Below the pieces are notes generated by a model. The model saw nothing but the letters and a program-made list of their open reading frames with translations. It was not told where the DNA came from and made no database searches. A DNA stretch of 64,000 nt, from sequence record MZ443771.1, one strand, 5' to 3'. This document shows, in pieces, positions 13,372 to 58,065 of the stretch (position 1 is its first letter; each line of letters starts with the position of its first letter). A program made the translations under genes and the position numbers.

Positions 13372-14004
13372 TTATGGCCATGTGATGTTTTGATCTTTCG
13401 TAGGGTCTACCCATATCGTTCCGGCAGCTACGTTCCCAGGGTTCGTAGCACTGACGATGATAGACAGACGACCAGCAGGACCGGCTGGGCCAGTAGGGCC
13501 TGTAGGACCTGTGCTGCCAGTTGCGCCTGTAGGACCTGTACCGCCACGAGGACCAGTAGGACCTGTAGGACCCATAGGACCTGTGCGACCATCTGGCCCC
13601 GTAGGACCAACAGGACCCGGTAGACCATCACGACCGTCAGGGCCCGGGAGACCTTGCTCACCATCAGGCCCTATGCCACCATCACACCCAGGTTCTCCGG
13701 GAGCACCGTCTCGGCCATCGCGACCGTCTTTACCGTCAGCACCTGTCTCACCTCTACCGCCTTGACGCCCTTCCGGGATATCAGAAGCAGTAGGGAAACC
13801 GCCAACTTTCACTGTCTGCCCGTTAGCAAACTTGAGCGTAAGAATACCCGAAGTAGCATCGAATGATGAATCAGCAGTGAGTTCTGACGGTACGTTTTCC
13901 TCAGATGGGTCTACTGTCAGAGTACCCAACGAAGCACGTACAGGAGTAGACGTAGACGAAGAACCTGCTTGAATGAGGCCAGTTTTTACTTTAATCAGAC
14001 CCAT
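13372..14004 (-). CDS. Collagen-like protein (210 aa)
   Basis: Long G-X-Y run with GPTG repeats. C-terminal IIVSATNPG...GTIWV motif. Confidence 0.85.
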
Positions 14005-25980: not shown

Positions 25981-26019
25981 CATATTGATATTACTATCTG
26001 CAATTTTTATTTACAGATT

Positions 26020-44336: not shown

Positions 44337-44355
44337 TTTAGGTGCTCCAGATACG

Positions 44356-44384
44356 AAAAAGGGCAGCCTATTGGCCACCCTTTT
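44356..44384 (-). terminator. Rho-independent terminator of the capsid operon
   Basis: GGGTGGCC/GGCTGCCC stem followed by TTTTT. Confidence 0.75.
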
Positions 44385-44403
44385 GGTTACCCGTAATCGG
44401 GTG

Positions 44404-44796
44404 TTAGTCGTCAAGTCGTAAGCGAATCAATGTTGAAGGGGCAGAGGATTCAGAATCAACTTCGTCCTCTTGCTCGTCTTCTAATTCGTCTTCAACTTCA
44501 TCATCAGAGTTCAGGCTGATAACTTCGTCGTCGTGTAACGGCTCGGCTACTTCTTCCTCGGCGTTAAGCTCTAAAGCAGCAGACAGCGCGGCAACGGATT
44601 CGCCCACCCCAGAAGCGTTACTCACCGAGTTAACAAGGCACGAAGCCTCGAAGTTATCAGCGAGTTCGCATTCGAGGAAGTCCTCAGTGTCTGGTGCTAC
44701 AGAAGCCTGCGCAAGCAAGCGAGCAGCATCAACCCACTGTCCTTCACGCGCTGCGATGATTGCCAGTGCAGCTAAGGAACCAGTCAAAGTCTTCAT
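44404..44796 (-). CDS. Small acidic head-assembly protein
   Basis: Follows the capsid gene. E/D-rich C-terminus containing VDSESS. Confidence 0.65.
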   Translation of the reverse strand: MKTLTGSLAALAIIAAREGQWVDAARLLAQASVAPDTEDFLECELADNFEASCLVNSVSNASGVGESVAALSAALELNAEEEVAEPLHDDEVISLNSDDEVEDELEDEQEDEVDSESSAPSTLIRLRLDD

Positions 44797-44848
44797 GTTT
44801 GGTCCTCAGTTAAGAGGGCAACATTACGCTGCCCTCAATGCACGACAA

Positions 44849-45946
44849 TTATCCGCGTACTGCTTTCGCAACGGAACGCACGTTCGCCAGAGTGAAGGAG
44901 AAGGTGCTTGACAGCAACCAGCCGCGGTCGGTGTTACCCATGTTCGCGCCGGAAGTCGGGGTAGACTGGGTACCGCCACGAGTGGTGTACACTGCGTGGT
45001 AGTCCTGGTCTGCCAGAACGTACAGCTCACCGTCGTGCAGCACACGGTGCTCTGGAGCGCGGAAGCCGTCAGTTACCAGCTCCATACCCAGCAGAGTACC
45101 CAGACGGCCGGTAGTGATCAGGTCATACTTAGACACAGGGTCCAGAGCAGAGGTGAACTGATCGTTACCAACGATATCGTTCCAGTAGTCCTGCGCCATC
45201 ACAGCGGTGCTAACAGGCAGCGGCCAGCTTGACACAGAATTTTTCAGAGTAGACAGCAGACGCGGAGTCAGGTCACCGTGAACCCAGGTGATTGGGTTAG
45301 CGATACCAACTGCCTGGTCACAAGCAGTTTTCCACAGACGGTCTTCTGCAACCATGATAGATTGCAGGCCATCTTGCTGCGCGCGGTCCAGCAGGTCGCC
45401 GTTGATCTGATCCAGATCCATTTTGCTAACACGGATGTTGGATTTCAGTTCGAACTCAGCAGGCGTGTAAACACGACCGCGGAATTGACGGTAACCGTAG
45501 TCGGTAGGACCGGTTGCGATGATAGCTTCTGCCTGGTGGATTTTCAGTTCGATACGAGCGATATCGCCTTGACGAACGGTAGCACCTTTACAGACCTTGC
45601 GCAGCAGGCCGGCACGTTCAGCACGGTCTTCGATAGATGCAACGATAGATGCACCCAGAGAAGCCCACTTCTGGCCGCTGCCGTCAGCGATAGCTTCCTG
45701 GAACAGTTCGATCTTCTCAGCTTCGGACAGGCCGTTGTCGCTAGAGACAGAGTGAACCAGTTCACCAGTTTGGAAGCTGTTCATCAGCTTGCTGATTTGT
45801 CCCAGCAGGTCTTTTTGGCTTGATGCGTTAATCTCACCAGTAGATGAGGACAACGCCAGCTCGCCTTTACCGCCGAAACGCAGGTCTTCGATAGGGGCGC
45901 CAGAACGCAGGGTTACTTTCGCGCCGCGCATTACAGAATTGTTCAT
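44849..45946 (-). CDS. Major capsid protein (HK97-fold, inferred)
   Basis: Follows protease and scaffold genes, with strongly biased codons. Q.I...EDRLW and G.LG...G...VT....R...L..GE.YV motifs. Confidence 0.8.
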   Translation of the reverse strand: MNNSVMRGAKVTLRSGAPIEDLRFGGKGELALSSSTGEINASSQKDLLGQISKLMNSFQTGELVHSVSSDNGLSEAEKIELFQEAIADGSGQKWASLGASIVASIEDRAERAGLLRKVCKGATVRQGDIARIELKIHQAEAIIATGPTDYGYRQFRGRVYTPAEFELKSNIRVSKMDLDQINGDLLDRAQQDGLQSIMVAEDRLWKTACDQAVGIANPITWVHGDLTPRLLSTLKNSVSSWPLPVSTAVMAQDYWNDIVGNDQFTSALDPVSKYDLITTGRLGTLLGMELVTDGFRAPEHRVLHDGELYVLADQDYHAVYTTRGGTQSTPTSGANMGNTDRGWLLSSTFSFTLANVRSVAKAVRG

Positions 45947-46005
45947 TAGTTGCTCCTGAGAATAATCTCGTAAGTTTCAGTTCAAACAGTTACGGTGCGC
46001 GACGA

Positions 46006-46713
46006 TTAAGCGCCGTAAGAGGAAGACATTTCGACGATCAGGTAACCACGTTCAGTGGTAGGCGCCTGCTTGATAACGCAGCCTTTCAGCACGGTACCGT
46101 TACCGCCGATGGTCAGCAGACCGTTCGGGCCGAGGGTTGGGTGGATAACGTTGTCAGCAGACCAGTCAGCAGTCGGGTCAAACATAGAGGTAGCGATGTT
46201 ACCCAGTTTGATGTAACCACAACGACCCTGAACGTTAGAAGCCAGGCCACCGATAGGAGCATCAGCAGTGTAAGAACGCGCTTCGGTCACAGACAGTTCG
46301 TAAGCATACTGGATGCGAACTTTCTTGCCTTCGTCGTCAGCGTGGAAGTACAGGTCAGCACCCTGAACACCGACTTTACCTTCTGCGGTAGGAGTCGCGC
46401 TGGCTTCCTGATCAGCTTTAGCGCCGTCAATTTTAACCAGCAGTGCACCAGCGTCTGGAACGCGAGTTGCAGTGAACTTACGAGTCGCGTCGATAGTGAA
46501 CTCTTCAACGCGGTTCATGTGCGAAGGCGGCATGGAGCGAGCCAGTGCGAAACCAGCAAACACTTCGTTAGCAGCGCCGGTAGACAGACGCAGGAAGGAG
46601 TGACCGCCTTCACGAGCCCATACCAGTGCAACACCTTCTTCGTGGATTACTTCGCCCGGCAGCAGGTCAGCTTCCTGGGTCTGTACGATATCGGTAGCAT
46701 TTTGAAACAACAT
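46006..46713 (-). CDS. Head decoration/cement-type structural protein
   Basis: Lies between scaffold and capsid genes with biased codons. Likely start is MLFQNA (GGAG SD). Confidence 0.6.
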   Translation of the reverse strand: MLFQNATDIVQTQEADLLPGEVIHEEGVALVWAREGGHSFLRLSTGAANEVFAGFALARSMPPSHMNRVEEFTIDATRKFTATRVPDAGALLVKIDGAKADQEASATPTAEGKVGVQGADLYFHADDEGKKVRIQYAYELSVTEARSYTADAPIGGLASNVQGRCGYIKLGNIATSMFDPTADWSADNVIHPTLGPNGLLTIGGNGTVLKGCVIKQAPTTERGYLIVEMSSSYGA

Positions 46714-46768
46714 AATCAGTTTCTCCAATGAGAGAGATATGTGAGAGACAAACCTTCACAGGCTGCAA

Positions 46769-48808
46769 TTACTTGCAGCGCAGGCGAGCGAGTTTATCTT
46801 CGAACGATGAGTCAGTGGAAGCTGAACTCTGGGATTCAACGGTTTCTTCTTCCTGAGACAGGAGCTGTGCAGCAGACGGCTGTGCTTTAGGAGCAACAGC
46901 AGGAGCTTGCTGAACAACGTTGGCACGAGCAGCGGTAACAGTACCGGCAGCCGCGTCGATAGACTCAGAAATTTCGTTCTGTGCCACTTCGGACTTGGAC
47001 ATCAAGTCGTTAGCTTTGGACAGAGCGACAGTAAGGAAGTCCTTACCGTGAGCGATGAACGCTTGCTCAATCAGAGCGCGTGGGTCTTTGATACCTGCCG
47101 CAGTGAGCGAGCGGGACAGAGAATCCACGATTGGGTTGCTTGCATCGCCCCAGAAGTTTTTGGTGATACCCAACTGAGCAGCAGACAGAGCAGCAACGAA
47201 ACGTTCGCTGTGTGCAGCAGTCGCTTCTTCGATAGTTGCTGTGACGTTCGCAGTAGCTTCGCTAATACGAGTGTCAGATTCTGCCACCAGCAGTTTATCT
47301 ACCGGCATTTCGATCTGATACGGCATAAAGCCGAATGCTTCACAAGTGCCGGTCACGCCTGTCTGATTCAGAGAGTGTGATACTGCACGGATGAAATTAT
47401 CAGATTCGAAACTTTTCGCTGCGTTTTCTTCGCCAACAGCACCAGATACAGAGGCGAACGTTGCGCGAGCGATTGGCTGGCCATCGTAGTACATGTGTAC
47501 TGCGGCGACTTTACCAGTTGAACGGCTCAGGCTGACCAGTGAAGGGTCGAGCGTACCGTGCTGCGCCTGTGCAGTAGACAGGCTATTGAAGACGCGATTA
47601 ACGACCTTGCTCTCAGAGTCAAACTCGTCTTCTTCGTCGTCGAGATCCAGGTCATCTTCTTCCAGATCGTCTTCGTCGTCGAGGTCTTCGTCGTCATCGG
47701 AGCTAGACTCGGAATCGAAGTCATCTTCTTCAAGATCATCTTCTTCCAAGTCTTCGTCGTCGAGGTCGTCTTCTTCAAGATCGTCCTCTTCGTCTTCCTC
47801 GTCGTCAGAGCTGGATTCAGAGTCAAACTCATCATCTTCCAGATCTTCCATGTCTTCGTCGTCGAGGTCGTCTTCGTCCAGATCTTCGTCGTCGAGGTCT
47901 TCCTCGTCGTCGATATCATCGTCTTCGTCATCGTTAGATGATTCAGAATCGAAGTCGTCATCTTCCTCGTCGTCGTCCATATCTTCGAGGTCGTCTTCTT
48001 CAACGATATCAATATCGCTATCGTCGCCAGACGTTGACGCTTCTACTGGTTCGTCAACCAGCGCAGCAGAGCAATGTGCGCAGAACACAGGCTCTTCGTC
48101 GGAGCTTACAGTGAACGGCTGGTCGCATTTAGCGGAGCAGCTATACATGTGAGCTTCAACTTCACCGTTAGTCGCGGCAGAAGACAGCGCGGTAACAGCT
48201 TCAGGAGATTCCTGAGGTTCGCAGCTATCAACAGCCTGGCCGGTGTACGGGTCGAAGTTTGCAGCAACAGCAGCATTAAAGCTACCAGTGCTAGACACGG
48301 CGGTAAACGCGTGTGCGTTGCTCAGTGCCTGTGCGAAGTTGCGTTGAGCTTCTTCGGCGGTAGCGCCTGTAGCAACCAGACCAGCGTGTTCAACTTGCTC
48401 GTCCGCAGCAGCGGATTCAGCCAGGAACTGAGTAACACGCTCGTCGGTGATTTCAGACAGGTCAGCAGAGCACGATGGGCAGCAGCCCTGTACCAGAGCA
48501 GAGCTATCAGAGATAACGTGGCTACCACAACCATCAAGACAGATGGTGTAATGAGCTTTCACATCACCAGCAGAAGACTGCGACTGGACTTCGGCGCGCT
48601 CAACCAAATCAGGATGCTCTTCCAGCAGCTCATTGCCGCCTTTCGGATTGTAGAGGTCAGCGCCACTCTGCGAAGCAAAGCCTACACCGTCAGAGGACCC
48701 GAAAATCATCAGGTTCTGTCCGAGTGCAGTACGGCGAAAGTTCTCTACTGCCTGATTATGGTTTTTACCGACACACAGGATACCCGCGAGTTGGGTAATC
48801 TTTGGCAT
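46769..48808 (-). CDS. Prohead scaffold/core protein with Cys clusters and a long D/E tract
   Basis: Likely start is MPKIT. CxxxC/CxxC clusters and ~140 residues that are nearly all acidic, punctuated by four FDSES motifs. Confidence 0.7.
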   Translation of the reverse strand: MPKITQLAGILCVGKNHNQAVENFRRTALGQNLMIFGSSDGVGFASQSGADLYNPKGGNELLEEHPDLVERAEVQSQSSAGDVKAHYTICLDGCGSHVISDSSALVQGCCPSCSADLSEITDERVTQFLAESAAADEQVEHAGLVATGATAEEAQRNFAQALSNAHAFTAVSSTGSFNAAVAANFDPYTGQAVDSCEPQESPEAVTALSSAATNGEVEAHMYSCSAKCDQPFTVSSDEEPVFCAHCSAALVDEPVEASTSGDDSDIDIVEEDDLEDMDDDEEDDDFDSESSNDDEDDDIDDEEDLDDEDLDEDDLDDEDMEDLEDDEFDSESSSDDEEDEEDDLEEDDLDDEDLEEDDLEEDDFDSESSSDDDEDLDDEDDLEEDDLDLDDEEDEFDSESKVVNRVFNSLSTAQAQHGTLDPSLVSLSRSTGKVAAVHMYYDGQPIARATFASVSGAVGEENAAKSFESDNFIRAVSHSLNQTGVTGTCEAFGFMPYQIEMPVDKLLVAESDTRISEATANVTATIEEATAAHSERFVAALSAAQLGITKNFWGDASNPIVDSLSRSLTAAGIKDPRALIEQAFIAHGKDFLTVALSKANDLMSKSEVAQNEISESIDAAAGTVTAARANVVQQAPAVAPKAQPSAAQLLSQEEETVESQSSASTDSSFEDKLARLRCK

Positions 48809-48886
48809 GGTTAAAACCCTCATAGAATTTATAGTCGTTGAATCGACAGGTTAAAATTAAGATATGCAGAAAAAATCAAGGAATTT

Positions 48887-50029
48887 TTAAATTTTTCTGC
48901 TATCAATGTCAGCTTGTGGAATATAGCGATTTTCGAAGTATTTCGAGACAACTTCTACGCCATTTAAGGTGTATACGTTGCGTAAACTATATCCCCAAAC
49001 CATCAGTTCTGCGAGCGTTGCGAAGTGCTCCGTAGGGACCGTTTTAATGGTACGTGCGGTCAGAGAATCTGGGTGGATTTTCTTGCCGCGAATGGCCTGA
49101 TCGAACTTCATACGGTCTACGTTACGCAGCATCGTATCGTCCACAAAGTGGGCTAATTCGTGCGTAATAACGTGTGCCATACTCAGGCTATTATACCCAC
49201 CAAGCAACTGTACTAACTGCGCTGGATGGATTGAAATCGCACCATACAGGAAGCCATGCACACGGTACGTAGCGATATGACTACCACCACTATCCGAGTT
49301 AGCTTTCAGAACGCCAACATACAGACGGTCGAAGGGCAGTGCAATGTTCAGGCCAACGCCGGGCATCACGTTTTCCTGAATGTCTTTGAGCACATAATCA
49401 GGAGGACTGACGCCATTCTTTTCGAACGATATCCCCGGCACACGCAGCTCATCCATACCTTTAACTTCAAGGTGGACTCTACCACATTTCTTAACAGGCT
49501 TGACAGCGTAGTTATTTGGTGTGCCGCCTGGGTAAACAGCAGAGGCATAACGCAGCGCTTTCATGTTGCCGAAATCGACTTCACCTAAACGCTGAACCTG
49601 ACGTGCTTTCATGCTGTCAGTTGTATCGTCATCACCTGCAACAGGCATTGGTGGGAGTTTATCGAGGGGTACGTTGACTTTCGAAGGAGGCAGAGGTTCT
49701 GGCGCAGGCTTCTTGACAACGGTAGGCTTAGCCTTTGGTTTAGACGCTTTCTTTTCTTCTTCGTAAGGCGTGAAGTTGAAGTCAGGCTTAAACAGCGCGT
49801 CAGGCTTCGCAGTGAATGGCCGGCTGGTGGTAGCAATCATGTCACCATCAACGCCACTGATCGCAGCAGCACGATCATATTTAGGGTGAGCTATGTAGTA
49901 CAGGTCGCTATTGACTTGAAGCAGACCCACGACCTCACGCGGCTGCATACGAATGCCGTTTGAGATCATGGTGTCGTTACCCAGATAGCGATAGTACGAA
50001 TAGTCTAAGATAGATAGACCTTCCGCCAT
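48887..50029 (-). CDS. SH3-like paralogue domain fused to an HExxH zinc-metallopeptidase-like domain
   Basis: ITHELAHFVD with downstream EHFA. Confidence 0.65.
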   Translation of the reverse strand: MAEGLSILDYSYYRYLGNDTMISNGIRMQPREVVGLLQVNSDLYYIAHPKYDRAAAISGVDGDMIATTSRPFTAKPDALFKPDFNFTPYEEEKKASKPKAKPTVVKKPAPEPLPPSKVNVPLDKLPPMPVAGDDDTTDSMKARQVQRLGEVDFGNMKALRYASAVYPGGTPNNYAVKPVKKCGRVHLEVKGMDELRVPGISFEKNGVSPPDYVLKDIQENVMPGVGLNIALPFDRLYVGVLKANSDSGGSHIATYRVHGFLYGAISIHPAQLVQLLGGYNSLSMAHVITHELAHFVDDTMLRNVDRMKFDQAIRGKKIHPDSLTARTIKTVPTEHFATLAELMVWGYSLRNVYTLNGVEVVSKYFENRYIPQADIDSRKI

Positions 50030-50030
50030 A

Positions 50031-50810
50031 TTACGCCATCCTTAACAGGTGCTCTTTGTAGGTTGCGGCACATGCGAATGCCGGGTCGTCTACGCTACTG
50101 CACTCAAAGCCTGTCAGGAGTTTGCAGTCACGATAGACCAGACGCCCTGTACGTGCATCGAGATACGTAGGCTTGTTGAACGCTGTATGCGAACAGAAGT
50201 TACGCGCACGAGGTGTTACCAACTGACCACAGATACTGCATTTATATGCACGGTAGGTTGTGCCTTTGCTGTACGTGTTCAGTTCACCGCTCATGATTCG
50301 GTCGCAGCGCTCTTTGCAGCGTGTACGGTCGAATGCAAGCAGCAACGTCAGACGTGCGTGGTCGCCACGGAAGTTCTTGAGCTTCGACAGGTTAGAGTCA
50401 AAGATCATGCCCATAGCTTGACGGTAGTCTTTGTTGTTGTGCTCGATGAACGTCGGCTTACCGATGAACGTCTGATACGCAAGGCGTCCTTGGTCAGGGT
50501 TGAACGTCAACCATTCTTGCAGACTAAACGCATCACCGTTCGTGTTCGGAAGTTCTGTGATGTTCACAGGAACAGGCACAATGATATAGTCGCGGATATC
50601 GCGTGACGTGTTGTACTGCTCGGCAGCTTTAGGCAACCACACGTTCACGTCGAGGTTAAAAGAGCCAGTCTGAATACCGAAACGCGAAGCATCCACACGA
50701 ATAGACTTAGCTGTTTTGCTAACGTCTTCCTTGTGAAGGTCAATCGCGTTCAGTCCGACTAAGCCCATGTCCGAGGTATCAAACGACTCGGAACGAATGG
50801 ACTGATCCAT
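50031..50810 (-). CDS. Prohead maturation protease with inserted zinc-finger-like segment
   Basis: Likely start is MDQSI (AGGAG). F.GKP..IEHN, G.IFD, YSKG, CSICG...CSH and FECSSVDDPA motifs. Confidence 0.75.
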   Translation of the reverse strand: MDQSIRSESFDTSDMGLVGLNAIDLHKEDVSKTAKSIRVDASRFGIQTGSFNLDVNVWLPKAAEQYNTSRDIRDYIIVPVPVNITELPNTNGDAFSLQEWLTFNPDQGRLAYQTFIGKPTFIEHNNKDYRQAMGMIFDSNLSKLKNFRGDHARLTLLLAFDRTRCKERCDRIMSGELNTYSKGTTYRAYKCSICGQLVTPRARNFCSHTAFNKPTYLDARTGRLVYRDCKLLTGFECSSVDDPAFACAATYKEHLLRMA

Positions 50811-50820
50811 CGTGTTCTCC

Positions 50821-51231
50821 CTATTGGAATTTGTCGATATTGTTGCGCGTATTAGCCAGACGCACGTTACCCTCATCTGCTTGGAAGCAGTCAAGGTTGT
50901 CAGAGCTATTCAGCCAATAACGCAAGCGGCCATTAGAAATTACTGCACTTTCAACAAATGCAGGTACTTCAAAGCCATCTTTTGTTTTGACATAGACCTC
51001 GACGCCGGGATAGAAAACGTCGAAGGACTTGGTGCTGAATATAGGCTGCACTATATCGCACTCACGAACAGGGTGCTGCGCATAGCGGCTTTGAATCATA
51101 TAGATCGCCTCATCCTTGTTAATCAGGATAGAGTTGATCGTGCCACGTAGCGTACAAGGCGAACAATACTCAGACGGTACGTTGAATGAAACAATGTCAG
51201 CGATGTTGTATGCAAAAGAGAACTGTGCCAT
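50821..51231 (-). CDS. Hypothetical protein, two similar small beta domains
   Basis: GAGG SD. Duplicated F...(D/E).V.....G.(I/V).S..I...Y. Confidence 0.7.
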   Translation of the reverse strand: MAQFSFAYNIADIVSFNVPSEYCSPCTLRGTINSILINKDEAIYMIQSRYAQHPVRECDIVQPIFSTKSFDVFYPGVEVYVKTKDGFEVPAFVESAVISNGRLRYWLNSSDNLDCFQADEGNVRLANTRNNIDKFQ

Positions 51232-51232
51232 G

Positions 51233-52114
51233 TTAACCTCTCAGTGCACCACGCGCCCATGACTTAGCCAACGCAAGAGTCATACGTGCAGGGTTATGCA
51301 GTTTGACTTCCCCTTTGTGGACAGCGGTGAAAGGCTCGTGTGCGTTCTGACCGCGACCAGAGCGATAGGCAGCTTCGTTGAAACCATCGAACAGGGTAAC
51401 TACCCAGCCCGTAGATTTCTCAGAGCACTCACCACATGCTTTATCCCACACAATCTTACCGCACACACGGCCACCAGCATTGACTGCATAGCTGATTTGC
51501 TCAGTGCCTTTGTAGACGTCTTGGGACTTGAGTGTCTTAAACGTCACACGGGAAGACGACTCGGAGCGTGGCACCATCTTCTCTTTCATCGACTCGATAT
51601 CAAGCGATGACCAGAAAGACTCAAACAGCGCGGCAAACTTCTGCTCAATAGGCAGGTCTACCGCGTTGATTTGTGCAATGGTGCTGGAGCTATCAGCGAG
51701 CACACGGTTGAGGAAGTAGCCACCGAGAATAACAGGCATCTGTGTGCCTTGCGTTCCGGTAGTTAAGCCAGACTTCTTGCAGTAGATTTCTGACAGGCCG
51801 ACAGCAAGACGCGCAAGAGTCATGAACGTTTGCTTCTCGGTGCTGCCAGCAACCTCTGTGTAGATACGCGCAGCAATAGCAGGTACGACAGTGCGCTTTG
51901 CCACGCTCAGGATATCTTCTGGCTTAATCTCTTGCCCCAGCTTCTTCTTCGCAGCCAGTTCGAATGCGTTAATCAGGCTGGCTTTGTTCGCTGGTGTCAG
52001 AGACTCGCTCAACTTCATAGTTGTCTGCTCTGAGCTGTTCACCAGACCTTGCTGGGGTTTCTTCTCCAGACGACGAACCCCCGACGTCGATCTCATTAGT
52101 CGCTTCACTGTCAT
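51233..52114 (-). CDS. Hypothetical (possibly head-associated) protein
   Basis: Start is either ATG 52114 (AGGA 8 nt upstream) or ATG 52018. Contains LSESL and RSESSS. Confidence 0.7.
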   Translation of the reverse strand: MTVKRLMRSTSGVRRLEKKPQQGLVNSSEQTTMKLSESLTPANKASLINAFELAAKKKLGQEIKPEDILSVAKRTVVPAIAARIYTEVAGSTEKQTFMTLARLAVGLSEIYCKKSGLTTGTQGTQMPVILGGYFLNRVLADSSSTIAQINAVDLPIEQKFAALFESFWSSLDIESMKEKMVPRSESSSRVTFKTLKSQDVYKGTEQISYAVNAGGRVCGKIVWDKACGECSEKSTGWVVTLFDGFNEAAYRSGRGQNAHEPFTAVHKGEVKLHNPARMTLALAKSWARGALRG

Positions 52115-53219
52115 TTGATTGTTCCTGAGTAGTAGGCTGCAAGTAGGCAAGCAGCCCGGAGTTCTGAATTGCCTCGTTCAGGTCTTCGCCACGGTGCGTG
52201 GTGAGCTGTGCGAGATAGTTAAGAGCCGGTTGGACCATACCGAGGTTGCGACAGCCCCAGTAGGCTAAGTCGTAGCACATGTCTAAATTAATAGAGGTTT
52301 GGTCGAACAAGAAACTTTTTGGATTCTGCTTAACAGCGTCGATGCCCTGAATAGCAAAGCCTACAGCATTCATCATATCGTCACGACGATAGAAGATATC
52401 AGCAAGCATCGCATAGCATTCAACGCGATCAGGTCTTGCAGCAATCGCACGGTAACAGGCAAAGATAGACTCCTGCGTGTAACCGCTTTTAAACTCTGCT
52501 TTCGCCAGTTCGAGGTTTGCAATCGCAACGTAGTCAGACCATTTAGCGATACCTGCGAGGCGTGCTACTTCGGCGCGAGCCATATCGAGCATATCGAAGT
52601 GGTTGCCGTAGTTAACAGCATAGCAGAGTTCACGCGCGTAATAGAAACTGCAACGGTCATCATGCGGGTAGCTACCTACATCCAGACCAAGCTCCAACAG
52701 ATAGTTGCGCTCTTTCTCCGTGTCAGGATAATGGTCAGTAGCAAACGTTGCTTCGACTGTACGCAGTCTCTGGTCAGGCTTACGCGACGACAGGACTTCG
52801 TGCGCACGGTACTTCCAGAAGTAAGAGCGACGACGATACGCTTTCATCTGCTGGTAGTGACTATCACCGTTGCGCATCAGAATCCAAACTGCTTCGGCGT
52901 GTTTAATGTGTTTCGTATTGCGTAGCGTTTCAACCCAATTAGGATCATCGAAACGTTCGTCAATGTCGAGCCACACAACGAGGTCATCCTCTGTGAATGG
53001 CGTAGCGGCCAGCTCCCTGCTTGCACCCAGATTGCGTTCATCTGACACATCAAACGAGTGATAGATGTTTGGGTGCTGGAATGCCGCGATGATGTTTGTG
53101 GTATTGTCCGTGCTGCCTGTATCAACGATACTGATCGCATCAGCAGCAGCAACGTGTTTCAACCACTCACCGATATTCTTTTCTTCATTACGGCAGATAG
53201 CCGCTACGCAAATTCTCAT
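51969..53219 (-). CDS. GT2 family glycosyltransferase with C-terminal TPR repeats
   Basis: I..ICRNEE.NI, VDTGSTDNT and LDIDE (DxD) motifs, then helical TPR-like repeats. Confidence 0.88.
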   Translation of the reverse strand: MRICVAAICRNEEKNIGEWLKHVAAADAISIVDTGSTDNTTNIIAAFQHPNIYHSFDVSDERNLGASRELAATPFTEDDLVVWLDIDERFDDPNWVETLRNTKHIKHAEAVWILMRNGDSHYQQMKAYRRRSYFWKYRAHEVLSSRKPDQRLRTVEATFATDHYPDTEKERNYLLELGLDVGSYPHDDRCSFYYARELCYAVNYGNHFDMLDMARAEVARLAGIAKWSDYVAIANLELAKAEFKSGYTQESIFACYRAIAARPDRVECYAMLADIFYRRDDMMNAVGFAIQGIDAVKQNPKSFLFDQTSINLDMCYDLAYWGCRNLGMVQPALNYLAQLTTHRGEDLNEAIQNSGLLAYLQPTTQEQSNDSEATNEIDVGGSSSGEETPARSGEQLRADNYEVERVSDTSEQSQPD

Positions 53220-53235
53220 ACATGCCTCATTTGGG

Positions 53236-54153
53236 TTATACTAAAATGTTGCCGCTATCCCACCAGCGCTTGCCGTAGATATCAGACAGGCGATAGTCAA
53301 GAATGAGTGGCTGGTCAAGATCGACTTGCGTTATGTAACGCTGTAAGTACGGACTCCAAACTGTTTTCTCCTCAGTGTAGAGTCGTATCTCCAATTCAAT
53401 GTCGCCTTGAGAGTTCTTCGGTACGAACGGATGAGAGTAGTCCCCATCAAAGCCTGCACCGAGTGAGTCGTCAAAGTATGTGTACGCACGAATTTCTTCT
53501 GCGCTGTTAATCAGCGTCGGTGAGTACACTTGACGGTTGTAATACGAGGTGTAATCAGCAACAGTCGCTTGCATGACAGTGCGGCGCTTATAGATACGCG
53601 TCACACCTTTGCTGTCTGTCTCAGCGCGGTACTGGTTGTAATACCAGCGAATCTCCGCAAACTTAACAGGCTTCAACTGTGGCTGACCTGCTGCATACTG
53701 CATGAACGGCTTCGCAGTGAAACGATGGTACGTCTTCTGCGTGTTCAATCTGTAGAGCAGAATCTGGTACGTGTACCACTGATAAACATCAAGGGTGATC
53801 GTACCGCTATCTGATTGCTGCGTACCGTTAGTGAGAATGTAAGAGAAACAGTCTGCACCAACGTAACCGCTGCGTGGGTTATAGAGGAACGCATCGTTGA
53901 AGTAGTTCAGTCGCACTGTGCCCACCATCGGGTCGTTAACCTTGATAGCAGCAAGACGCCAGCCCCTTTGAGCTGGCACCTTATCGAGCACACCCTCTGT
54001 CGGGCTATGCAGCGTCACTTCATCACGAGCGCCTTGTAAGATCTTTTCGAGTGTGATTTCAGTTTGACCTGAGTTACGCACTCGCACTGTCAGGTTCGGA
54101 GCTAATGGTTTGTAGTTACGCCAGTAGTCGAACGTACAAGGCAAAGAGAGCAT
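53236..54153 (-). CDS. Structural protein with Ig/cadherin-like (Big_9-type) domain
   Basis: G.V......F.Y.P..GY.G.D.FSY...NG motif. Likely start is MLSLPC. Confidence 0.7.
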   Translation of the reverse strand: MLSLPCTFDYWRNYKPLAPNLTVRVRNSGQTEITLEKILQGARDEVTLHSPTEGVLDKVPAQRGWRLAAIKVNDPMVGTVRLNYFNDAFLYNPRSGYVGADCFSYILTNGTQQSDSGTITLDVYQWYTYQILLYRLNTQKTYHRFTAKPFMQYAAGQPQLKPVKFAEIRWYYNQYRAETDSKGVTRIYKRRTVMQATVADYTSYYNRQVYSPTLINSAEEIRAYTYFDDSLGAGFDGDYSHPFVPKNSQGDIELEIRLYTEEKTVWSPYLQRYITQVDLDQPLILDYRLSDIYGKRWWDSGNILV

Positions 54154-54155
54154 AA

Positions 54156-56102
54156 TCACTCCAGTTTGTATTTGCTCTTGAACTCCGCGATACTCATAAC
54201 AGGGATGCCTTTGTCCATCGCTTTCTGGAGTTTCGCAGAACCAGATCCAGGGTCTTTAGCAATCAGGATTGTCGTGTCAGCTTTCATGCTGTCAGTCGCA
54301 ACGCCGCCGAGTTCAGTGATACGCTGCATCAGGTCGCGGTCACGCACACCAGTGAATGCCACGTTGACGCCTTTGAGCTTGCTGCTGGTGACTTTCACTT
54401 TCTTCGGTGCAACGAGCGTCACATCCATTTCGACTGCCATGAGATAGGACTTAACAGCAGCATCAGCAATCTGCGGAGCCAGCTTGTCTACCCCGTGCAT
54501 ACCGCTAATCTTGAGAGTCAGATCAGCAGTCTTACCTTTCTTGAGATATTGCTCAAGGTTAGGAATGGCATCAACAACCTTGTCGAATGTCGTGTTAGCG
54601 CCGCGCATGAAGAATGACGCAGTAGCTTTAAGCCACGTATTCATCGGCACGCCAGCTTTCAACGTCTTCAGGTCTTTCGCTAACTGACGACCGCGAGAGT
54701 CACCAACGATTTCACGCAGTGATGCCATAGGCGTCATGAACAATTGTTGAGGCGTTTTAATGCCAGAAGCAACGAGCAACTTACAGGTGCTTGGACCTGT
54801 GTTCGCAATATCAAGTCCGCGCAGGAACGAACCGAGAAGACGAGCATCAGCAACAGAGGACTTCGCTTTGACAACGAACTCTACACCGTTAATCTTGTAC
54901 GGTACGTCAGGCAGCTTAGGCTTCTTAGCAGGCTTGAGAATCTCCATGATGTATGGGATTACCTTGCCACTTCGAATCAACTTAACCTTAGCGCCAATGC
55001 CTAACGGTCGTTTAGGACCAAGCACTGCACCTTTCTTCTTCGGCTTGAGATAGCCGTGCTCAACGTAGAAACCGTTGTGCGCAGAAGCACGTTCAACAGT
55101 CACACCGCCGGGCATGATTGTTGGCGGGAAGATTGCAACAGGCGCGAGCACACCGTACTTCGACTCTTGGTAGATAACGTCTTTGACAGTCACAATAACC
55201 GTGTCAGACTCAACGTTCATTTTGAACTTGAACGCGTGACGTGGGTTACTGGCAGTTGCTTTAGGCGTAGGAATATCACGGGTCATTACGATCCCATCAA
55301 GTTCATACTTCGCCTTAGCAATACGTTTGTCCAACCACGGGATGAGTTGTTCTTCGTCATCAAAACGCAGAGGACCGAAGTGACGAACGACTTCGAATCC
55401 CCATTTGTCTAACAGCTTGAACTGACTGGACTGCTTGAGAGTAGCACCTTTACCAGCAAGTATGCCGAAGCACACCATGTGGACGTACTTGAACTCTTTC
55501 GCAGTCTCGAAGTTACGGACCAACCCTGACGCAGCGTTACGCGCAGCTTTGAAGCGACCACCAGCAGACTCATGCAGCTTTGCCATGAACGTCTTATACG
55601 GGATAAGCGCCTCACAGCGAAGCACCACTTCACCCTTCTCAGGAATCTTTTGGGGGATGCGCATCGAAGGTAAGTGCTGAGACACGTCTTTGCCGTGAGT
55701 AGCGTCACCACGAGTATACGCTTTGACAGGCACGCCTCTCTGGTACACGATCTCAATACTCAGACCGTCCAGCTTATCTGTCAGCATCCACTCAACGTCT
55801 TCTGCAAGAGCTTTGGACAATTGTTTGCCGCCGAGAGCATACTGGTCAAGACTTGCCATTGGTACAGGCAGCTTAACATCAGAATCATCACGCGCACCAA
55901 TCTTACGCGCCAGCTTTGACTTAGGCCAGCGTGTGTCGATGTAGTTACGAATGTGATCATACACTGCATCTGATACAAGACCTTCAGAATCAGTGTGGAA
56001 CGCATCATCAAGATGCGCCACAAGTTTCGTTGCCTGAGTCAGATTGAGCGTGTCGAGAACCTTGTTAGGATTCTTCTCTAATCGCTTCAAAGAGATTTGC
56101 AT
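54156..56102 (-). CDS. ligA: NAD-dependent DNA ligase
   Basis: SDAVYD (domain Ia), KLDG, TRGD, DGIV, A.K, OB-fold RSG.VIP and C-terminal BRCT (FTG...KA...GIP) motifs. Confidence 0.92.
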   Translation of the reverse strand: MQISLKRLEKNPNKVLDTLNLTQATKLVAHLDDAFHTDSEGLVSDAVYDHIRNYIDTRWPKSKLARKIGARDDSDVKLPVPMASLDQYALGGKQLSKALAEDVEWMLTDKLDGLSIEIVYQRGVPVKAYTRGDATHGKDVSQHLPSMRIPQKIPEKGEVVLRCEALIPYKTFMAKLHESAGGRFKAARNAASGLVRNFETAKEFKYVHMVCFGILAGKGATLKQSSQFKLLDKWGFEVVRHFGPLRFDDEEQLIPWLDKRIAKAKYELDGIVMTRDIPTPKATASNPRHAFKFKMNVESDTVIVTVKDVIYQESKYGVLAPVAIFPPTIMPGGVTVERASAHNGFYVEHGYLKPKKKGAVLGPKRPLGIGAKVKLIRSGKVIPYIMEILKPAKKPKLPDVPYKINGVEFVVKAKSSVADARLLGSFLRGLDIANTGPSTCKLLVASGIKTPQQLFMTPMASLREIVGDSRGRQLAKDLKTLKAGVPMNTWLKATASFFMRGANTTFDKVVDAIPNLEQYLKKGKTADLTLKISGMHGVDKLAPQIADAAVKSYLMAVEMDVTLVAPKKVKVTSSKLKGVNVAFTGVRDRDLMQRITELGGVATDSMKADTTILIAKDPGSGSAKLQKAMDKGIPVMSIAEFKSKYKLE

Positions 56103-56141
56103 GATTTTCTCCGATCGTCATTAACACTGGTATTTACAGCA

Positions 56142-57989
56142 TTAAGAGGCGATTGGGTCCTTGTTAACAGGGAAGTCTTCGGTCATGTCGAGCACACGAT
56201 TGAACAGCTTCGGTGCCATGTCCTTGACGTGTTCTGCGTAGTCAAACAGGTTCTGCTTACGCGCACGGTTCACACGCACCTGACGAACTTCATCTGGGCT
56301 GTTCGTGATATCGTACACTGTGTAGATAACGATGTTATCTGAGGCAGAGTGCGTACTGACCTTCAATACTACCCAGTCGCGTTTGAGTTTCGCATCTGCT
56401 CTGAATTGCAGCACGTCACCTTCTTCTGCTTCCTCGGCGCGATGCTGAGGAGTAGACTTGTTAGCGGCAGCAATCTTCTTCGCAGTCTCACGCGCTTCCT
56501 TCTCGGCAGCAGCAACGTCAGAGTCGGTATCTTCTTCGGCAGAGGTTTCATCTACCGCATCGGCGGCATCAGCATCCTCGTCCTCTGAGTCGCCATCTTC
56601 ACCTTCATCGTCAGTTGTTCCGTCGTCAGACTCGGCATCATCCACAGATCCATCGTCTTCGGAATCGTCTTCCCCATCTTCTGCATCATCAGCACCTGTA
56701 TCGCTATCGTCAGTGTCTTCTTCTGCATCTGGGTCTTCCTCTTCTTCGGGATCGACTTCTTCTTCGCCGTCAGTATCTTCCTCTTCAGGTTGAGGTGCAG
56801 GCTTCTTGCCTTTAGCGCGAACTTTAGGTGGCGGAGCGTCTTCTTCGTCGTCATCAGGCTCGTCAATGTCTGACAGGTCGAGTGCAGGTTCTTCATGGTC
56901 AGCAGAGTCATCGCCACCAAACAGAGAGCCTACAGAATCTTCGATGTTAAACACATCGCCTGAGAACGGACTACGTGCGAGAATGTCTTCCAGCTTCTGC
57001 TCGTCGAGGTCAAGATCGATTTCGACTTCTTCGATTGCGTCGTCCAGAATTTCTTCTTCAATGACACGCATACGCTTGCCACGTCTGTCCGTATTGTCCT
57101 CATAGACAGTACGCACTTCGGCTTTAGGAGCTTCAATTTCACCGCTACGCACTTTCGAGCGCAGGTCTTTCATCTCGGCAGCACGTTCCTGAGCTTTCTT
57201 ACGCGCTTCTTTCTGGAGTTCTTTGCGTTGTTGCTTCTGCTCCAGAACCTTAGCGTTGTTAGCGAGGCGTTGAGCTTCTTCCTCTTCTGCCTGACTGCGA
57301 CGACGAGCACGGCGTACTAACTTGCGATAGTTTTTGAGCGTGTCAACATCGACAGTACCTTTCGGCCAATCATTGAAAGGCAGGATGTTTGTATCATGCA
57401 CAATCAGATCGTACTGCGCGTCATCAACTTTCAGGAACAGACCGTCAGTGTTAATGACAACACCGCCTTTACCTGGGCGTAAGAAACGAACACCAATCAT
57501 GTCGTTCTTGTAGAGCTTCGTCATACCCTTTGAAGTCTTCACTGGGTATTCAGAGCTTGCCACCATGCGCCACTGGTAGTTATCGAAGTCAACACCGTAT
57601 ACGGCTTCTGACTTGACTTTACGCGGTGAGAATCTCGCAGCATCGAACTGCACACGGTTCAGTTGTCGCTGCATCGTTTGAGCACCGGCAACCTTTGTGC
57701 GCTTACCATCACGATTAACGACGTCAGGTACTTTACGCAGCTTCGACGCACGTTCCATCAAGAATAGGCCAGTGGCTTTATCAAGAGGGAAGTCAACGTG
57801 AGGCATATCTGGGAAAATAAGAGTGTAGCGACCGCCATTACGCAGCGGGAGAATACCGAAGATATCTCCGTCACGAATCATGCGCTTATGAGTTCGTTGG
57901 GATACTTCTTTTCCGCGTGAGCCTGTGTACTTCATCCACGCGTACTTCGATACGGCATCTTGATATGATGCGGATACGGAAAGTATCAT
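56142..57989 (-). CDS. Protein with two SH3-like paralogue domains, coiled coil and long acidic tract
   Basis: Likely start is MILSVS, 34 nt after GCTAATTT. AWMKYTG...GDIFGI domain plus a D/E-rich linker. Confidence 0.75.
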   Translation of the reverse strand: MILSVSASYQDAVSKYAWMKYTGSRGKEVSQRTHKRMIRDGDIFGILPLRNGGRYTLIFPDMPHVDFPLDKATGLFLMERASKLRKVPDVVNRDGKRTKVAGAQTMQRQLNRVQFDAARFSPRKVKSEAVYGVDFDNYQWRMVASSEYPVKTSKGMTKLYKNDMIGVRFLRPGKGGVVINTDGLFLKVDDAQYDLIVHDTNILPFNDWPKGTVDVDTLKNYRKLVRRARRRSQAEEEEAQRLANNAKVLEQKQQRKELQKEARKKAQERAAEMKDLRSKVRSGEIEAPKAEVRTVYEDNTDRRGKRMRVIEEEILDDAIEEVEIDLDLDEQKLEDILARSPFSGDVFNIEDSVGSLFGGDDSADHEEPALDLSDIDEPDDDEEDAPPPKVRAKGKKPAPQPEEEDTDGEEEVDPEEEEDPDAEEDTDDSDTGADDAEDGEDDSEDDGSVDDAESDDGTTDDEGEDGDSEDEDADAADAVDETSAEEDTDSDVAAAEKEARETAKKIAAANKSTPQHRAEEAEEGDVLQFRADAKLKRDWVVLKVSTHSASDNIVIYTVYDITNSPDEVRQVRVNRARKQNLFDYAEHVKDMAPKLFNRVLDMTEDFPVNKDPIAS

Positions 57990-58022
57990 GTTATTATCTC
58001 TATGTTGTACAAACACTCGTTG

Positions 58023-58030
58023 AAATTAGC
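58023..58030 (-). promoter_or_regulatory. GCTAATTT putative late promoter
   Basis: After a terminator, 34 nt upstream of ATG 57989. Confidence 0.6.
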
Positions 58031-58042
58031 TTGCGCAAGGGT

Positions 58043-58065
58043 AAAGCGGGGATTAACCCCCGCTT
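58043..58065 (-). terminator. Probable terminator
   Basis: AAGCGGGG/CCCCGCTT stem at the end of the 1377-aa gene, just before a GCTAATTT motif. Confidence 0.6.

Follow-up and report, generated by a model that had tools for sequence, protein, structure and literature searches.

The window, by which we mean the entire analysed stretch of 64,000 nucleotides (record MZ443771.1), comes from the genome of the Erwinia jumbo phage pEa_SNUABM_20 (Alexandravirus). It encodes a glycosyltransferase (GT in what follows; Table 1) that, judged by sequence comparison, belongs to the GT2-TPR family accompanying Thr-rich collagen-like proteins of the BclA/SgtA type. GT may well be an SgtA-like enzyme that O-glycosylates the phage's own collagen-like fibres, a reading based on sequence, structural modelling and analogy, which we hold with about even confidence; virion fibre glycosylation with such an enzyme has not been described so far for such phages. 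The alternatives that we aimed to weigh against it are the following: GT could act on other virion proteins, on a host or small-molecule target, or on the phage DNA.

Table 1. Location of GT, its domains, its neighbours and the candidate acceptors in the window
Feature	Coordinates	Strand	Remarks
GT2-TPR glycosyltransferase gene (GT)	51969..53219	(-)	416-aa ORF; RefSeq twin gp148, labelled 'beta-1,4-glycosyltransferase'
GT-A catalytic domain of GT, residues 1 to about 165	52725..53219	(-)	DxD = D85/D87; AlphaFold2 fold, Pfam and GmaR match
TPR-like all-helical domain of GT, residues 174-360	52140..52700	(-)	AlphaFold2, Foldseek; presumed acceptor-binding module
Disordered acidic C-terminal tail of GT, residues 366-416	51972..52124	(-)	net charge -11; pLDDT below 50
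Collagen-like fibre, 480 aa	14004..15446	(-)	29 triplets; C-terminal Hint-like domain; RefSeq twin gp111 'virion structural protein'; candidate acceptor
Collagen-like tail fibre, 210 aa	13372..14004	(-)	30 triplets, 10 with Thr at Y; candidate acceptor
Collagen-like tail fibre, 163 aa	12871..13362	(-)	21 triplets; candidate acceptor
Collagen-like tail fibre, 273 aa	6869..7690	(-)	24 triplets, 7 with Thr at Y; Gp53-like C-terminal domain; candidate acceptor
Ig-like (Big_9) protein, upstream neighbour of GT	53236..54159	(-)	Pfam Big_9 E=8e-5; PHROG 36743
Conserved downstream neighbour of GT, 261 aa	51233..52018	(-)	PHROG 31537
Head maturation protease	50031..50810	(-)	PHROG 18299, E=4.8e-126; RefSeq annotation

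Domain architecture of the glycosyltransferase

An earlier sequence-only reading had described a GT2 enzyme with TPR-like repeats at this locus, and the open reading frame, the Pfam GT2 match and the TPR-like domain of the AlphaFold2 model bear it out. The protein is 100% identical to the pEa_SNUABM_3/20 proteins. It is a member of the GT2 family, having the GT-A fold with the nucleotide-binding Asp motif and DxD. Pfam Glycos_transf_2 (PF00535) matches residues 5-112 with E=1.6e-8 (35.1 bits, the cutoff being 23.3), while the NCBIfam models gave only GT2 matches far below the threshold. In the model (pLDDT 88, pTM 0.80), the secondary structure of the N-terminal domain is that of an alternating beta/alpha Rossmann-like fold. 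The motifs D33-T-G-S-x-D38 and D85-x-D87-E88 show no variation among 37 homologs, R68 and H140-E141 being further invariant residues, and GT keeps all 35 of the 35 columns that are invariant across the jumbo-phage, small-phage and bacterial homologs, DTGSxD, DxDE and HE among them.

The Pfam TPR_14 match of GT is below the threshold (E=0.017). Despite this, the TPR-like domain is taken to be real on the strength of the model, because residues 174-360 are all-helical there, with pLDDT above 90 in the helices, because Foldseek matches this part to the consensus TPR, to the TPRs of OGT and GmaR and to the helical domains of SunS/ThuS, and because Pfam TPR matches are present in homologs with 26-31% identity to GT. 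The ordered part of the protein comprises residues 1-365. The acidic tail that follows extends into the beginning of the next gene; in the alignment, this tail is missing from the JA-type and small-phage homologs. We observed no membrane segment in GT, the maximum hydropathy over 19 aa being 0.83. Overall, GT is predicted to be a soluble, metal-dependent (DxD) GT-A enzyme fused to a TPR-like acceptor-binding domain.

Structural and sequence relatives

The top full-length Foldseek matches of the GT model are the peptide S-glycosyltransferases SunS and ThuS (PDB 7msn, 7msk; E about 6e-12, about 380 columns). They resemble GT in the combination of GT-A and TPR-like helical domains and act on a polypeptide, but they S-glycosylate Cys of a small bacteriocin precursor, are 14-16% identical to GT, and differ from it in the domain orientation (rmsd about 12.7 A, TM about 0.5). 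Membership of GT among the glycocin S-glycosyltransferases was rejected: its score with the NCBIfam SunS model TIGR04195 is 13.1 bits compared with a cutoff of 350, and a gene for a small Cys-rich peptide, which would be the glycocin precursor context, is absent near GT, so that the likeness is structural only.

The best sequence match in the PDB is the GT domain of GmaR from Listeria monocytogenes (PDB 22ao, 7x9r), covering residues 5-104 with E=6.5e-6, and the TPR part of GmaR is a structural match. GmaR is a GT2-TPR flagellin O-GlcNAc transferase, modifying Ser/Thr of a fibre-forming protein, and at the same time an anti-repressor. It differs from GT in being longer, in doubling as a transcriptional anti-repressor, and in having flagellin, not collagen, as the acceptor; a flagellin-type acceptor is not encoded in the window.

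The closest functional precedent, which the sequence-only reading had cited correctly, is SgtA of C. difficile, a Mn-dependent enzyme of 358 aa consisting of a GT-A domain and four TPRs, which transfers beta-O-GlcNAc from UDP-GlcNAc onto Thr/Ser of the BclA3 collagen-repeat peptides and whose gene adjoins bclA3 (PMC7157674). Compared with this published description, GT has the same arrangement of an N-terminal GT-A domain and C-terminal TPRs, a similar ordered length of about 360 aa, and is likewise predicted to be soluble and of the DxD/metal type; its bacterial relatives adjoin BclA_C collagen genes, as sgtA adjoins bclA3, and the acceptor motif, Thr at position Y of G-X-Y, also occurs in the phage fibres. 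The differences are the extra acidic tail of GT, its location in a head-gene block, 37-45 kb away from the collagens, and the nature of the candidate acceptors, which are virion tail fibres as opposed to exosporium hairs. An Anaerovoracaceae homolog has more than 7000 relatives, and among the best 120 of them no protein is named SgtA or assigned to C. difficile.

Homology of GT to the collagen-linked enzymes is full-length, both for the small-phage set (hhalign, E=5e-44) and for the bacterial collagen-adjacent set (hhalign probability 100%, E=2e-38, 322 columns), the members of the latter being 354-370 aa long. At the same time, the identity of GT to the collagen-linked homologs is only 26-31%, and this counts against the collagen reading.

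If GT modified the phage DNA, producing hypermodified bases that protect against restriction, it would play the textbook role of phage glycosyltransferases, a role that publications also assign to them by default; two genes upstream, there is indeed a gene for an NAD-dependent DNA ligase. The alpha- and beta-glucosyltransferases of T4 have the GT-B fold, whereas the GT model, with GT-A and TPR-like domains, is nearest to protein and peptide glycosyltransferases, no GT-B enzyme being found among the top Foldseek matches; membership among the T4-type DNA glucosyltransferases was rejected on this ground. The family is, besides, linked to collagens also in bacteria, for which one would not expect DNA glycosylation, and the paper on AD1/JA reports no sign of modified DNA. 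DNA is thus a very improbable acceptor.

More can be said for a host or small-molecule target (LPS, exopolysaccharide, a host protein such as flagellin, or a peptide), which would be modified for host takeover or superinfection exclusion, as is commonly supposed for phage GT2 'morons'. GT matches PHROG 13126 (E=2.5e-119), a family filed as 'moron, auxiliary metabolic gene and host takeover', and has a weak match, limited to the GT domain, to the GtrB-like enzymes of O-antigen conversion (PHROG 841, E=5e-6). The teichoic-acid glycosyltransferases TarS and RmlT are also among its structural matches by Foldseek, and GmaR-type enzymes modify flagellin. In two bacterial homolog contexts (PAP2, HD and AAA neighbours) we observed no collagen within 10 kb, and the phage literature takes roles in DNA or cell-wall modification for granted. 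GtrB is anchored in the membrane and, having GtrA and GtrC as partners, acts on undecaprenyl-phosphate and O-antigen, in temperate phages and with serotype conversion as the result. GT has the GT2 catalytic domain in common with these enzymes, but it lacks a membrane segment, carries the TPR-like domain and comes from a lytic jumbo phage, and the RefSeq annotation at 62-137 kb contains neither a second glycosyltransferase nor a GtrA/GtrC-type gene. The TPR domain and the likeness to SunS/GmaR point to a polypeptide acceptor, GT is a core gene in the structural block of lytic jumbo phages and not a variable moron, and the linkage of its family to collagens is strong; given these points, we regard a host or small-molecule target as improbable.

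Linkage of the enzyme family to collagen genes

In Bacillota, a collagen-like ORF is present in 53 of 80 loci of the enzyme family, and in 38 loci it ends within 500 nt upstream of the glycosyltransferase gene (median gap 122 nt). These neighbours are Thr-rich collagens bearing Collagen and BclA_C domains, as in the BclA-type exosporium proteins.

The same tendency was observed for viral loci. A collagen-like ORF occurs in 52 of 80 IMG/VR loci. If the count is restricted to loci whose upstream sequence amounts to 3 kb or more, it is 45 of 56, and in 36 of these 56 the ORF is found no further than 3.1 kb upstream of the glycosyltransferase gene and on its strand. The median fraction of Thr at Y in the collagens of the IMG/VR loci is 0.67. 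Among random viral loci with an equal base count, a Thr-rich collagen-like gene was seen in 2 of 119 (Fisher p about 1e-24, relatedness uncorrected). The linkage is present in 14 of 16 genomic backgrounds, but the small-phage loci partly constitute one related group, since 55 of the 84 clustered loci (80 from IMG/VR and four earlier phage contigs) fall into one neighbour-sharing group. Some of the viral collagens adjacent to the glycosyltransferase gene carry phage-fibre domains (Mtd_N, endosialidase chaperone, Collar), and the cultured phage DSL-LC01 provides a further case of the linkage. Some IMG/VR contigs classified as viral may be bacterial, for example L018, which encodes BclA_C. In the jumbo-type cluster (n = 8, of which 6 could be assessed), none of the 6 loci has a collagen within 10 kb of the glycosyltransferase gene.

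The four collagen-like fibre proteins

The four collagen-like proteins of the window noticed in the sequence-only reading are real (Pfam Collagen, E about 1e-14), although their description as Thr-rich, with GPT/GAT/GNT triplets, needs qualifying. Thr occupies 26 of the 104 Y positions of the four proteins (25%), Asp being about equally frequent, compared with about 65% in the collagens adjacent to glycosyltransferase genes (medians 0.62-0.67). The Thr-bearing triplets (GPT/GAT/GNT/GST) cluster in the C-terminal half of each collagen domain. The low fraction of Thr at Y counts against the collagen reading.

The collagen genes are located 37-45 kb from GT on the same strand. All annotated CDSs at 62-137 kb of the RefSeq twin are oriented in the same direction as GT, and thus GT and the collagens belong to one co-directional structural block.

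Co-retention in the jumbo-phage lineage

Both GT and the N-terminal module of the collagen fibres are present in Erwinia 48, Dickeya 8, Yersinia, Alcaligenes, Salmonella and NCTB phages, and the sets of phages having GT and having the fibre module largely coincide; for the orthologs of the 13372..14004 fibre, the set is the same as that for GT. In PaBG and Lu11, the glycosyltransferases are 27-30% identical to that of the window, and each phage has four collagen fibres, which were found by a direct scan and with a PaBG fibre as the query, the window fibre query having missed them. The outgroup phage phiRSL1 has neither GT nor collagen fibres. Thus, the co-occurrence check proposed in the sequence-only reading came out in its favour, with the enzyme and the collagens kept together in the jumbo lineage and both absent from phiRSL1, this co-occurrence representing essentially one vertical lineage and one outgroup. 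In all jumbo relatives, GT is situated apart from the collagens and beside the head protease, an arrangement that counts against the collagen reading.

In the PaBG virion proteome, obtained by SDS-PAGE and MALDI and mapped to RefSeq by subtracting the gp number of RefSeq from about 486 to arrive at the number used in the paper, neither GT nor the collagen fibres are among the proteins of the 14 gel bands; since only these 14 bands were analysed, the proteome is neutral with respect to glycosylation. A literature search yielded glycan data for none of these phages.

Gene neighbourhood of the glycosyltransferase

The placement of GT among head genes, as given in the sequence-only reading, holds for the downstream side, where two small genes are followed by the head maturation protease, KMPT-N, an acidic scaffold-like protein, a virion protein and the major head protein; upstream, there are the Big_9 protein and then the DNA ligase. 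The order of ligase, glycosyltransferase, two genes and protease is kept in PaBG and Lu11, and a gene in the position of 51233..52018 is also present in these two phages and in contig L008. The latter encodes a glycosyltransferase 30% identical to GT and, just upstream of it in the position of 53236..54159, a protein of ~305 aa with no Pfam match. PDB sequence searches gave no match for the product of 51233..52018 and no informative one for that of 53236..54159. A scan for promoters and terminators at 44-60 kb was at chance level and therefore yields no operon boundaries; searches of the window for tRNAs and Rfam families were negative.

This neighbourhood bears on the alternative that GT acts, in the manner of mycobacteriophage enzymes, on virion proteins other than the collagens, namely head, decoration or Ig-like proteins or the large adhesin. 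The place of GT between the ligase and the genes for head protease, scaffold and head protein is kept in PaBG and Lu11, an Ig-like protein is encoded directly upstream, and local Thr-rich stretches occur both in a 1377-aa fibre/adhesin-like ORF (58053-62186) and in the major head protein. Virion glycosylation near capsid genes has, moreover, been published for mycobacteriophages, where, according to PMC12619734, which cites Freeman et al. 2023, the acceptors are the C-termini of capsid and tail-tube subunits. So far as that citation goes, the two cases are alike in that the mycobacteriophages use their own glycosyltransferases, encoded in the structural block, on their own virion proteins, the window GT also being located in the head/tail block, and they differ in that the major head protein of the window has no C-terminal extension. 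A C-terminal acceptor tail of this kind was rejected for the head protein: its Thr stretch is internal, at about residues 318-342 of 365, and is followed by an ordinary C-terminus. The family of this head protein also reaches phages without GT, the neighbour observed family-wide is a collagen-like gene and not a capsid gene, and the gene order kept in the jumbo lineage may be plain inheritance. We therefore consider it unlikely that GT acts on these proteins instead of the collagens.

Proposed role of the enzyme

Returning to the collagen fibres as acceptors, the claim that a protein-directed enzyme modifies the phage's own fibres is favoured by the structure, by the family-wide linkage and by the co-occurrence in jumbo phages, and disfavoured by the distance of 37-45 kb, by the head-gene position and by the moderate Thr content. 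For the acceptor and the sugar used by this phage, and for when and to what biological effect they are joined, we infer the following course of events. GT would be expressed together with the late structural genes and, in the cytoplasm of the host, would draw on a host UDP-sugar, UDP-GlcNAc being the donor suggested if SgtA and GmaR are taken as models. The TPR domain would grip an extended or unfolded collagen repeat, and the sugar would be transferred by an O-glycosidic bond to Thr (possibly Ser) at Y of the G-X-T triplets. The acceptors would be the four collagen-like tail-fibre proteins, the modified triplets being those clustered towards the C-terminal end, in the second half of each collagen domain. 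The likely outcome would be a triple-helical fibre of the virion that is hydrated, stabilised and coated with glycans. Altered receptor binding or a shielding of the virion, as proposed in the sequence-only reading, may be further consequences.

More tentatively, and at somewhat less than even confidence, we suggest that a GPT-type Thr-rich collagen fibre and an SgtA-like GT2-TPR enzyme form an unrecognised widespread cassette, which serves both on the spore surfaces of Bacillota and in hundreds of environmental phages. As such a cassette, if real, would be common to both, many phage tail fibres might be collagens modified by O-glycosylation. In the 'hairy' jumbo myoviruses (Alexandra/Y3/AD1/PaBG/Lu11), the enzyme would be a core late gene serving four fibres, perhaps the tail 'hairs', and glycosylated Thr would replace hydroxyproline in the stabilisation of the triple helix, giving a glycan coat.

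That a phage can glycosylate proteins of its own virion is a recent finding, made in few systems (the mycobacteriophage capsid and tail tube), and phage GT2 genes are usually annotated, by default, as DNA- or cell-wall-modifying (PMC10202952, PMC7029224). If our reading is correct, the name 'beta-1,4-glycosyltransferase' propagated through RefSeq would be corrected, and glycans would be expected on a large class of receptor-binding or 'whisker' fibres, encoded in at least 312 IMG/VR contigs and in the whole Alexandra/Y3/PaBG lineage. BclA glycosylation on the spores of Bacillota and the modification of phage fibres would then represent one shared, exchangeable module, and in fire-blight biocontrol phages there may be effects on the stability of the fibres, on adsorption, on persistence in the environment and on recognition by antibodies.

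Genomic context of the glycosyltransferase gene

Positions 44000-60000 (16 kb) are 100% identical to Erwinia phage pEa_SNUABM_20 (MZ443771.1), and by the coordinate offset the window corresponds to bases 62001-126000 of this record. The RefSeq genome of pEa_SNUABM_3 (NC_061445; Alexandravirus), a lytic jumbo myovirus of ~266 kb infecting Erwinia amylovora, is 99.9% identical. The name 'hairy Myoviridae' has been given to Alexandra, Y3, the Dickeya phages AD1 and JA, and the Pseudomonas phages Lu11 and PaBG (PMC6143709). At 62-137 kb of pEa_SNUABM_3 all annotated CDSs are on the minus strand and make up one long block, in which a few enzyme genes are scattered among those for tail fibres, baseplate, tail and head.

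The sequence-only reading had placed a GT2-TPR glycosyltransferase (GT) among head genes. The ORF was confirmed, with a Pfam GT2 match and a modelled helical repeat domain. Its placement holds: in transcription order, GT is followed by two small genes, both conserved, and then by those for the head maturation protease, a metallopeptidase-like protein with KMPT-N, a scaffold-like protein of high acidity, a virion protein and the major head protein. The exception is the NAD-dependent DNA ligase, which lies upstream together with an Ig-like protein (Big_9). The conserved head-block position and the precedent of mycobacteriophage virion glycosylation would agree with modification of other virion proteins; this seems unlikely, however, given the linkage of the GT family to collagen genes and a major head protein without a C-terminal acceptor tail.

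Several neighbouring features were recorded (see the table). The 684-aa protein encoded between the protease and the head protein is called 'ATPase' in RefSeq and PHROG, although Pfam shows no ATPase domain; with its long, extremely acidic D/E-rich region of repeated FDSES-type units, it resembles an internal head protein or scaffold more than an ATPase. On either side of the ligase-GT-protease segment is a protein with KMPT-N, a domain fused to the N-terminus of KTSC/metallopeptidase proteins; one such protein is also retained in contig L008, whose GT is 30% identical. A 1.3 kb stretch amid tightly packed genes has no long coding-strand ORF and is unannotated in pEa_SNUABM_3 (between gp117 and gp118); its DNA shows 70-77% identity across Alexandravirus and AD1, and in part Y3. 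An Rfam scan of this stretch gave nothing above chance; it may serve as a regulatory region or encode an RNA not yet described.

Coordinates of the glycosyltransferase gene, the collagen-like fibre genes and other features
Feature	Sequence	Position	Strand	Remarks
GT gene	window	51969..53219	-	ORF, 416 aa
Collagen-like fibre	window	6869-7690	-	Pfam Collagen E ~1e-14; tail fibre/virion structural annotation
Collagen-like fibre	window	12871-13362	-	Pfam Collagen E ~1e-14; tail fibre/virion structural annotation
Collagen-like fibre	window	13372-14004	-	Pfam Collagen E ~1e-14; tail fibre/virion structural annotation
Collagen-like fibre	window	14004-15446	-	Pfam Collagen E ~1e-14; tail fibre/virion structural annotation
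Protein between fibre genes	window	7915-10794	-	959 aa; weak ILEI (interleukin-like EMT inducer) match, E=7e-5, below cutoff
Stretch without long coding-strand ORF	window	24700-26020
Acidic 'ATPase'	window	46769-48823	-	684 aa
KMPT-N protein	window	48887-50029	-	also HExxH-like motif region
KMPT-N protein	window	56142-58016	-	long acidic tail
Modification cluster	phiRSL1 (L304)	~16100-24500		record 163-171.5 kb
Collagen-GT cassette with halogenase	DSL-LC01 (L293)	6535-13077
Collagen-GT cassette with tailoring genes	L010	10001-13043
BclA-type collagen beside GT homolog	L018	8580-9803		contig filed as viral

Structure and class of the enzyme

GT matches Pfam Glycos_transf_2 above the curated cutoff (residues 5-112, E=1.6e-8) and PHROG 13126 ('beta-1,4-glycosyltransferase', E=2.5e-119). 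The AlphaFold2 model, built with 37 homologs, is confident (pLDDT 88, pTM 0.80). It places a GT-A domain at residues 1 to ~165 and an all-helical repeat domain at 174-360; residues 366-416 form a disordered, strongly acidic tail (net charge -11). The Pfam TPR_14 match is sub-threshold in GT itself; the 'GT2-TPR' label is right, as distant homologs bear genuine Pfam TPR matches in the region equivalent to the helical domain. Among solved structures, GmaR is the closest by sequence, through its GT domain (E=6.5e-6). In fold comparison, two glycocin S-glycosyltransferases, ThuS and SunS, match best over the full length (E ~6e-12, ~380 aligned columns); consensus TPR proteins, TarS and RmlT (both teichoic-acid enzymes), and OGT and GmaR, each through its TPR domain, come next. 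The enzyme class that GT resembles is that of sugar transfer onto polypeptides. The family-invariant D-T-G-S-x-D (nucleotide-binding) and DxD(E) motifs and the H-E pair are all kept, and, judging from its sequence, GT looks catalytically competent.

Action on the host envelope or another cellular target would be in line with the PHROG category, a weak GtrB-like match, the TarS and RmlT matches and two bacterial contigs with GT homologs near which no collagen was seen. We consider it improbable, since GT is soluble (no membrane segment was found in its sequence), contains a TPR domain and is a core gene in lytic phages.

Collagen-like fibres and their co-occurrence with GT in jumbo phages

The four collagens previously described as Thr-rich are all present, but their Thr-richness is moderate: among the 104 triplets, Thr occupies 26 Y positions (25%), Asp being about equally frequent. 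Thr is concentrated in the C-terminal half of each domain, and the N-terminal halves consist of charged GRD/GKD-type triplets.

All four fibres have a common conserved N-terminal module (~70 aa) before the collagen region and a Cys-containing triplet (GCP/GCD-type) mid-domain, both also seen in the PaBG and Lu11 orthologs; the former may be a common attachment module and the latter an interchain disulfide knot. In the largest fibre (14004-15446, 480 aa) the C-terminus is a Hint/intein-like domain (matches to Pfam PT-HINT, residues 337-470, E=5.5e-5, and Hint_2, E=2e-3, both below cutoff), which suggests a self-processing C-terminal module.

In the jumbo lineage GT is not adjacent to the collagen genes. 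Even in PaBG and Lu11, whose GTs are 27-30% identical to that of the window, it keeps its place after the ligase and a few small genes and, with two genes in between, before the head protease. GT and the collagen N-terminal module occur in the same Erwinia, Dickeya, Yersinia, Alcaligenes, Salmonella and NCTB records, and direct scans found four collagen-like fibre genes each in PaBG (whole genome) and Lu11. Ralstonia phage phiRSL1 has a head-protein family in common with the window phage; GT is absent from it (best tblastn E=0.42), and no collagen-like ORF was found in its whole genome. Thus, GT and the collagens are kept or absent together across these phages, although with one vertical lineage and one outgroup this concordance is statistically weak.

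phiRSL1 carries another modification cluster, with genes for a deoxyuridylate hydroxymethyltransferase, a sulfotransferase-like protein, an APS kinase and a sugar-nucleotide pyrophosphorylase/nucleotidyltransferase, pointing to a DNA or virion modification of a different type.

Linkage of the GT family to collagen genes

The neighbourhoods of distant GT relatives were surveyed, the collagen-linked members having low sequence identity to GT (26-31% over residues 1-335). Four unrelated contigs of small phages carry the homolog within the structural module; capsid and adaptor genes were seen among its neighbours, as were Mtd_N fibres, a 'Collar' fibre protein and another glycosyltransferase. In all four, intensely GPT/GAT/GST-rich collagen-like ORFs are situated a few kb upstream. 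L008 repeats the jumbo synteny (KMPT-N, NAD ligase, Nudix, 305-aa protein, GT, 261-aa protein).

An IMG/VR scan yielded 312 relatives. Counting as collagen-like any ORF with 8 or more G-X-Y triplets in runs of at least 6, 52 of the best 80 loci had one, as did 45 of the 56 with at least 3 kb of upstream sequence; in 36 of these 56 it was on the same strand, at most 3.1 kb upstream (median distance 1.9 kb). Most collagen-negative loci lack upstream sequence or are jumbo-type contigs. The median Thr fraction at Y in the linked collagens was 0.67, and sampled ones bear fibre modules (Mtd_N, endosialidase-type chaperone). The loci are not independent, as one broad group takes 55 of the 84 clustered (the 80 plus the four earlier phage contigs); when they are grouped by shared neighbour genes, linkage is seen in 14 of 16 assessable backgrounds. 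Among 119 control loci, drawn from IMG/VR via an arbitrary 14-mer (1.10 Mb vs 1.17 Mb) and representing random viral DNA rather than matched structural modules, two had such an ORF (odds ratio ~109, Fisher p ~1e-24, related loci counted separately).

In a cultured case, Actinomycetia phage DSL-LC01, the gene order is collagen, collagen, hypothetical, halogenase, GT. This flavin 'tryptophan halogenase', as well as a methyltransferase and a Glyco_transf_17 enzyme following a 579-aa GT in contig L010, may be signs of more elaborate modification of the fibres. A bacterial origin is possible for some IMG/VR contigs: L018, where a collagen with the BclA C-terminal domain adjoins the homolog, is either a phage with an acquired BclA-type fibre or a bacterial contig.

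A bacterial scan (one genome per species) gave 377 relatives, the best 80 being nearly all from Bacillota. A collagen-like ORF was present in 53 of these 80 loci, was the nearest same-strand upstream gene in 46, and ended at most 500 nt upstream in 38 (median gap 122 nt). The median Thr fraction at Y was 0.62, and three of four sampled neighbours had the BclA C-terminal domain, which marks those three as exosporium-type collagens. In profile-profile comparison the jumbo GTs are full-length homologs of both the bacterial and the small-phage collagen-adjacent sets (probability 100% for each; E=2e-38 and 5e-44). The fold and these bacterial contexts make it highly improbable that GT glycosylates DNA, for which the nearby ligase and convention speak, and nothing else.

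SgtA of C. difficile, the precedent characterised by experiment, has a GT-A domain followed by four TPRs; its length (358 aa) is comparable with that of the bacterial relatives (354-370 aa). It is Mn-dependent and UDP-GlcNAc-specific and, in agreement with the earlier claim that it acts on a Thr-bearing BclA collagen, modifies Thr (and Ser) in collagen-repeat peptides of BclA3 with beta-O-GlcNAc; the sgtA gene adjoins bclA3 (PMC7157674), whereas the window GT is not next to the collagens. The GT and SgtA families are very likely identical; no C. difficile-named protein was among the 120 matches listed in the relatives search.

Predicted function

With moderate confidence, we predict that the window GT is an SgtA-like protein O-glycosyltransferase. 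The fibre O-glycosylation proposed from the sequence alone is favoured by the fold, the family-wide collagen linkage and the co-retention in jumbo phages, but the separation of GT from the collagens and their modest Thr content at Y count against it. GT would be active late in infection and use a host UDP-sugar, the transferred sugar being, by analogy, possibly a HexNAc. The TPR domain would hold the collagen repeat, and Thr at Y positions in G-X-T tracts of the four fibres would be the acceptor. Glycosylated Thr in hydroxyproline-free collagens offers an analogy, by which the glycans might add to triple-helix stability and form a coat on the fibre.

In the literature searched we found neither a link between phage GT2-TPR enzymes and collagen-like fibres, nor reports of glycosylated collagen fibres in phages, nor proteome or glycan data for Alexandravirus. 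The published gel-band proteome of PaBG, a shallow one of 14 bands, includes neither GT nor the collagen fibres. Papers on freshwater actinophages and pelagiphages interpret glycosyltransferases as DNA- or cell-surface-modifying, and for phage collagen-like and tail-collar proteins the modifications predicted by Iyer et al. 2010 were hydroxylation and sulfation rather than glycosylation. GT is a divergent, newly recognised example of an already known enzyme type; the O-glycosylation that it is predicted to perform on the virion's collagen fibres would be a new form of known phenomena, namely glycosylation of spore BclA and of mycobacteriophage virions.
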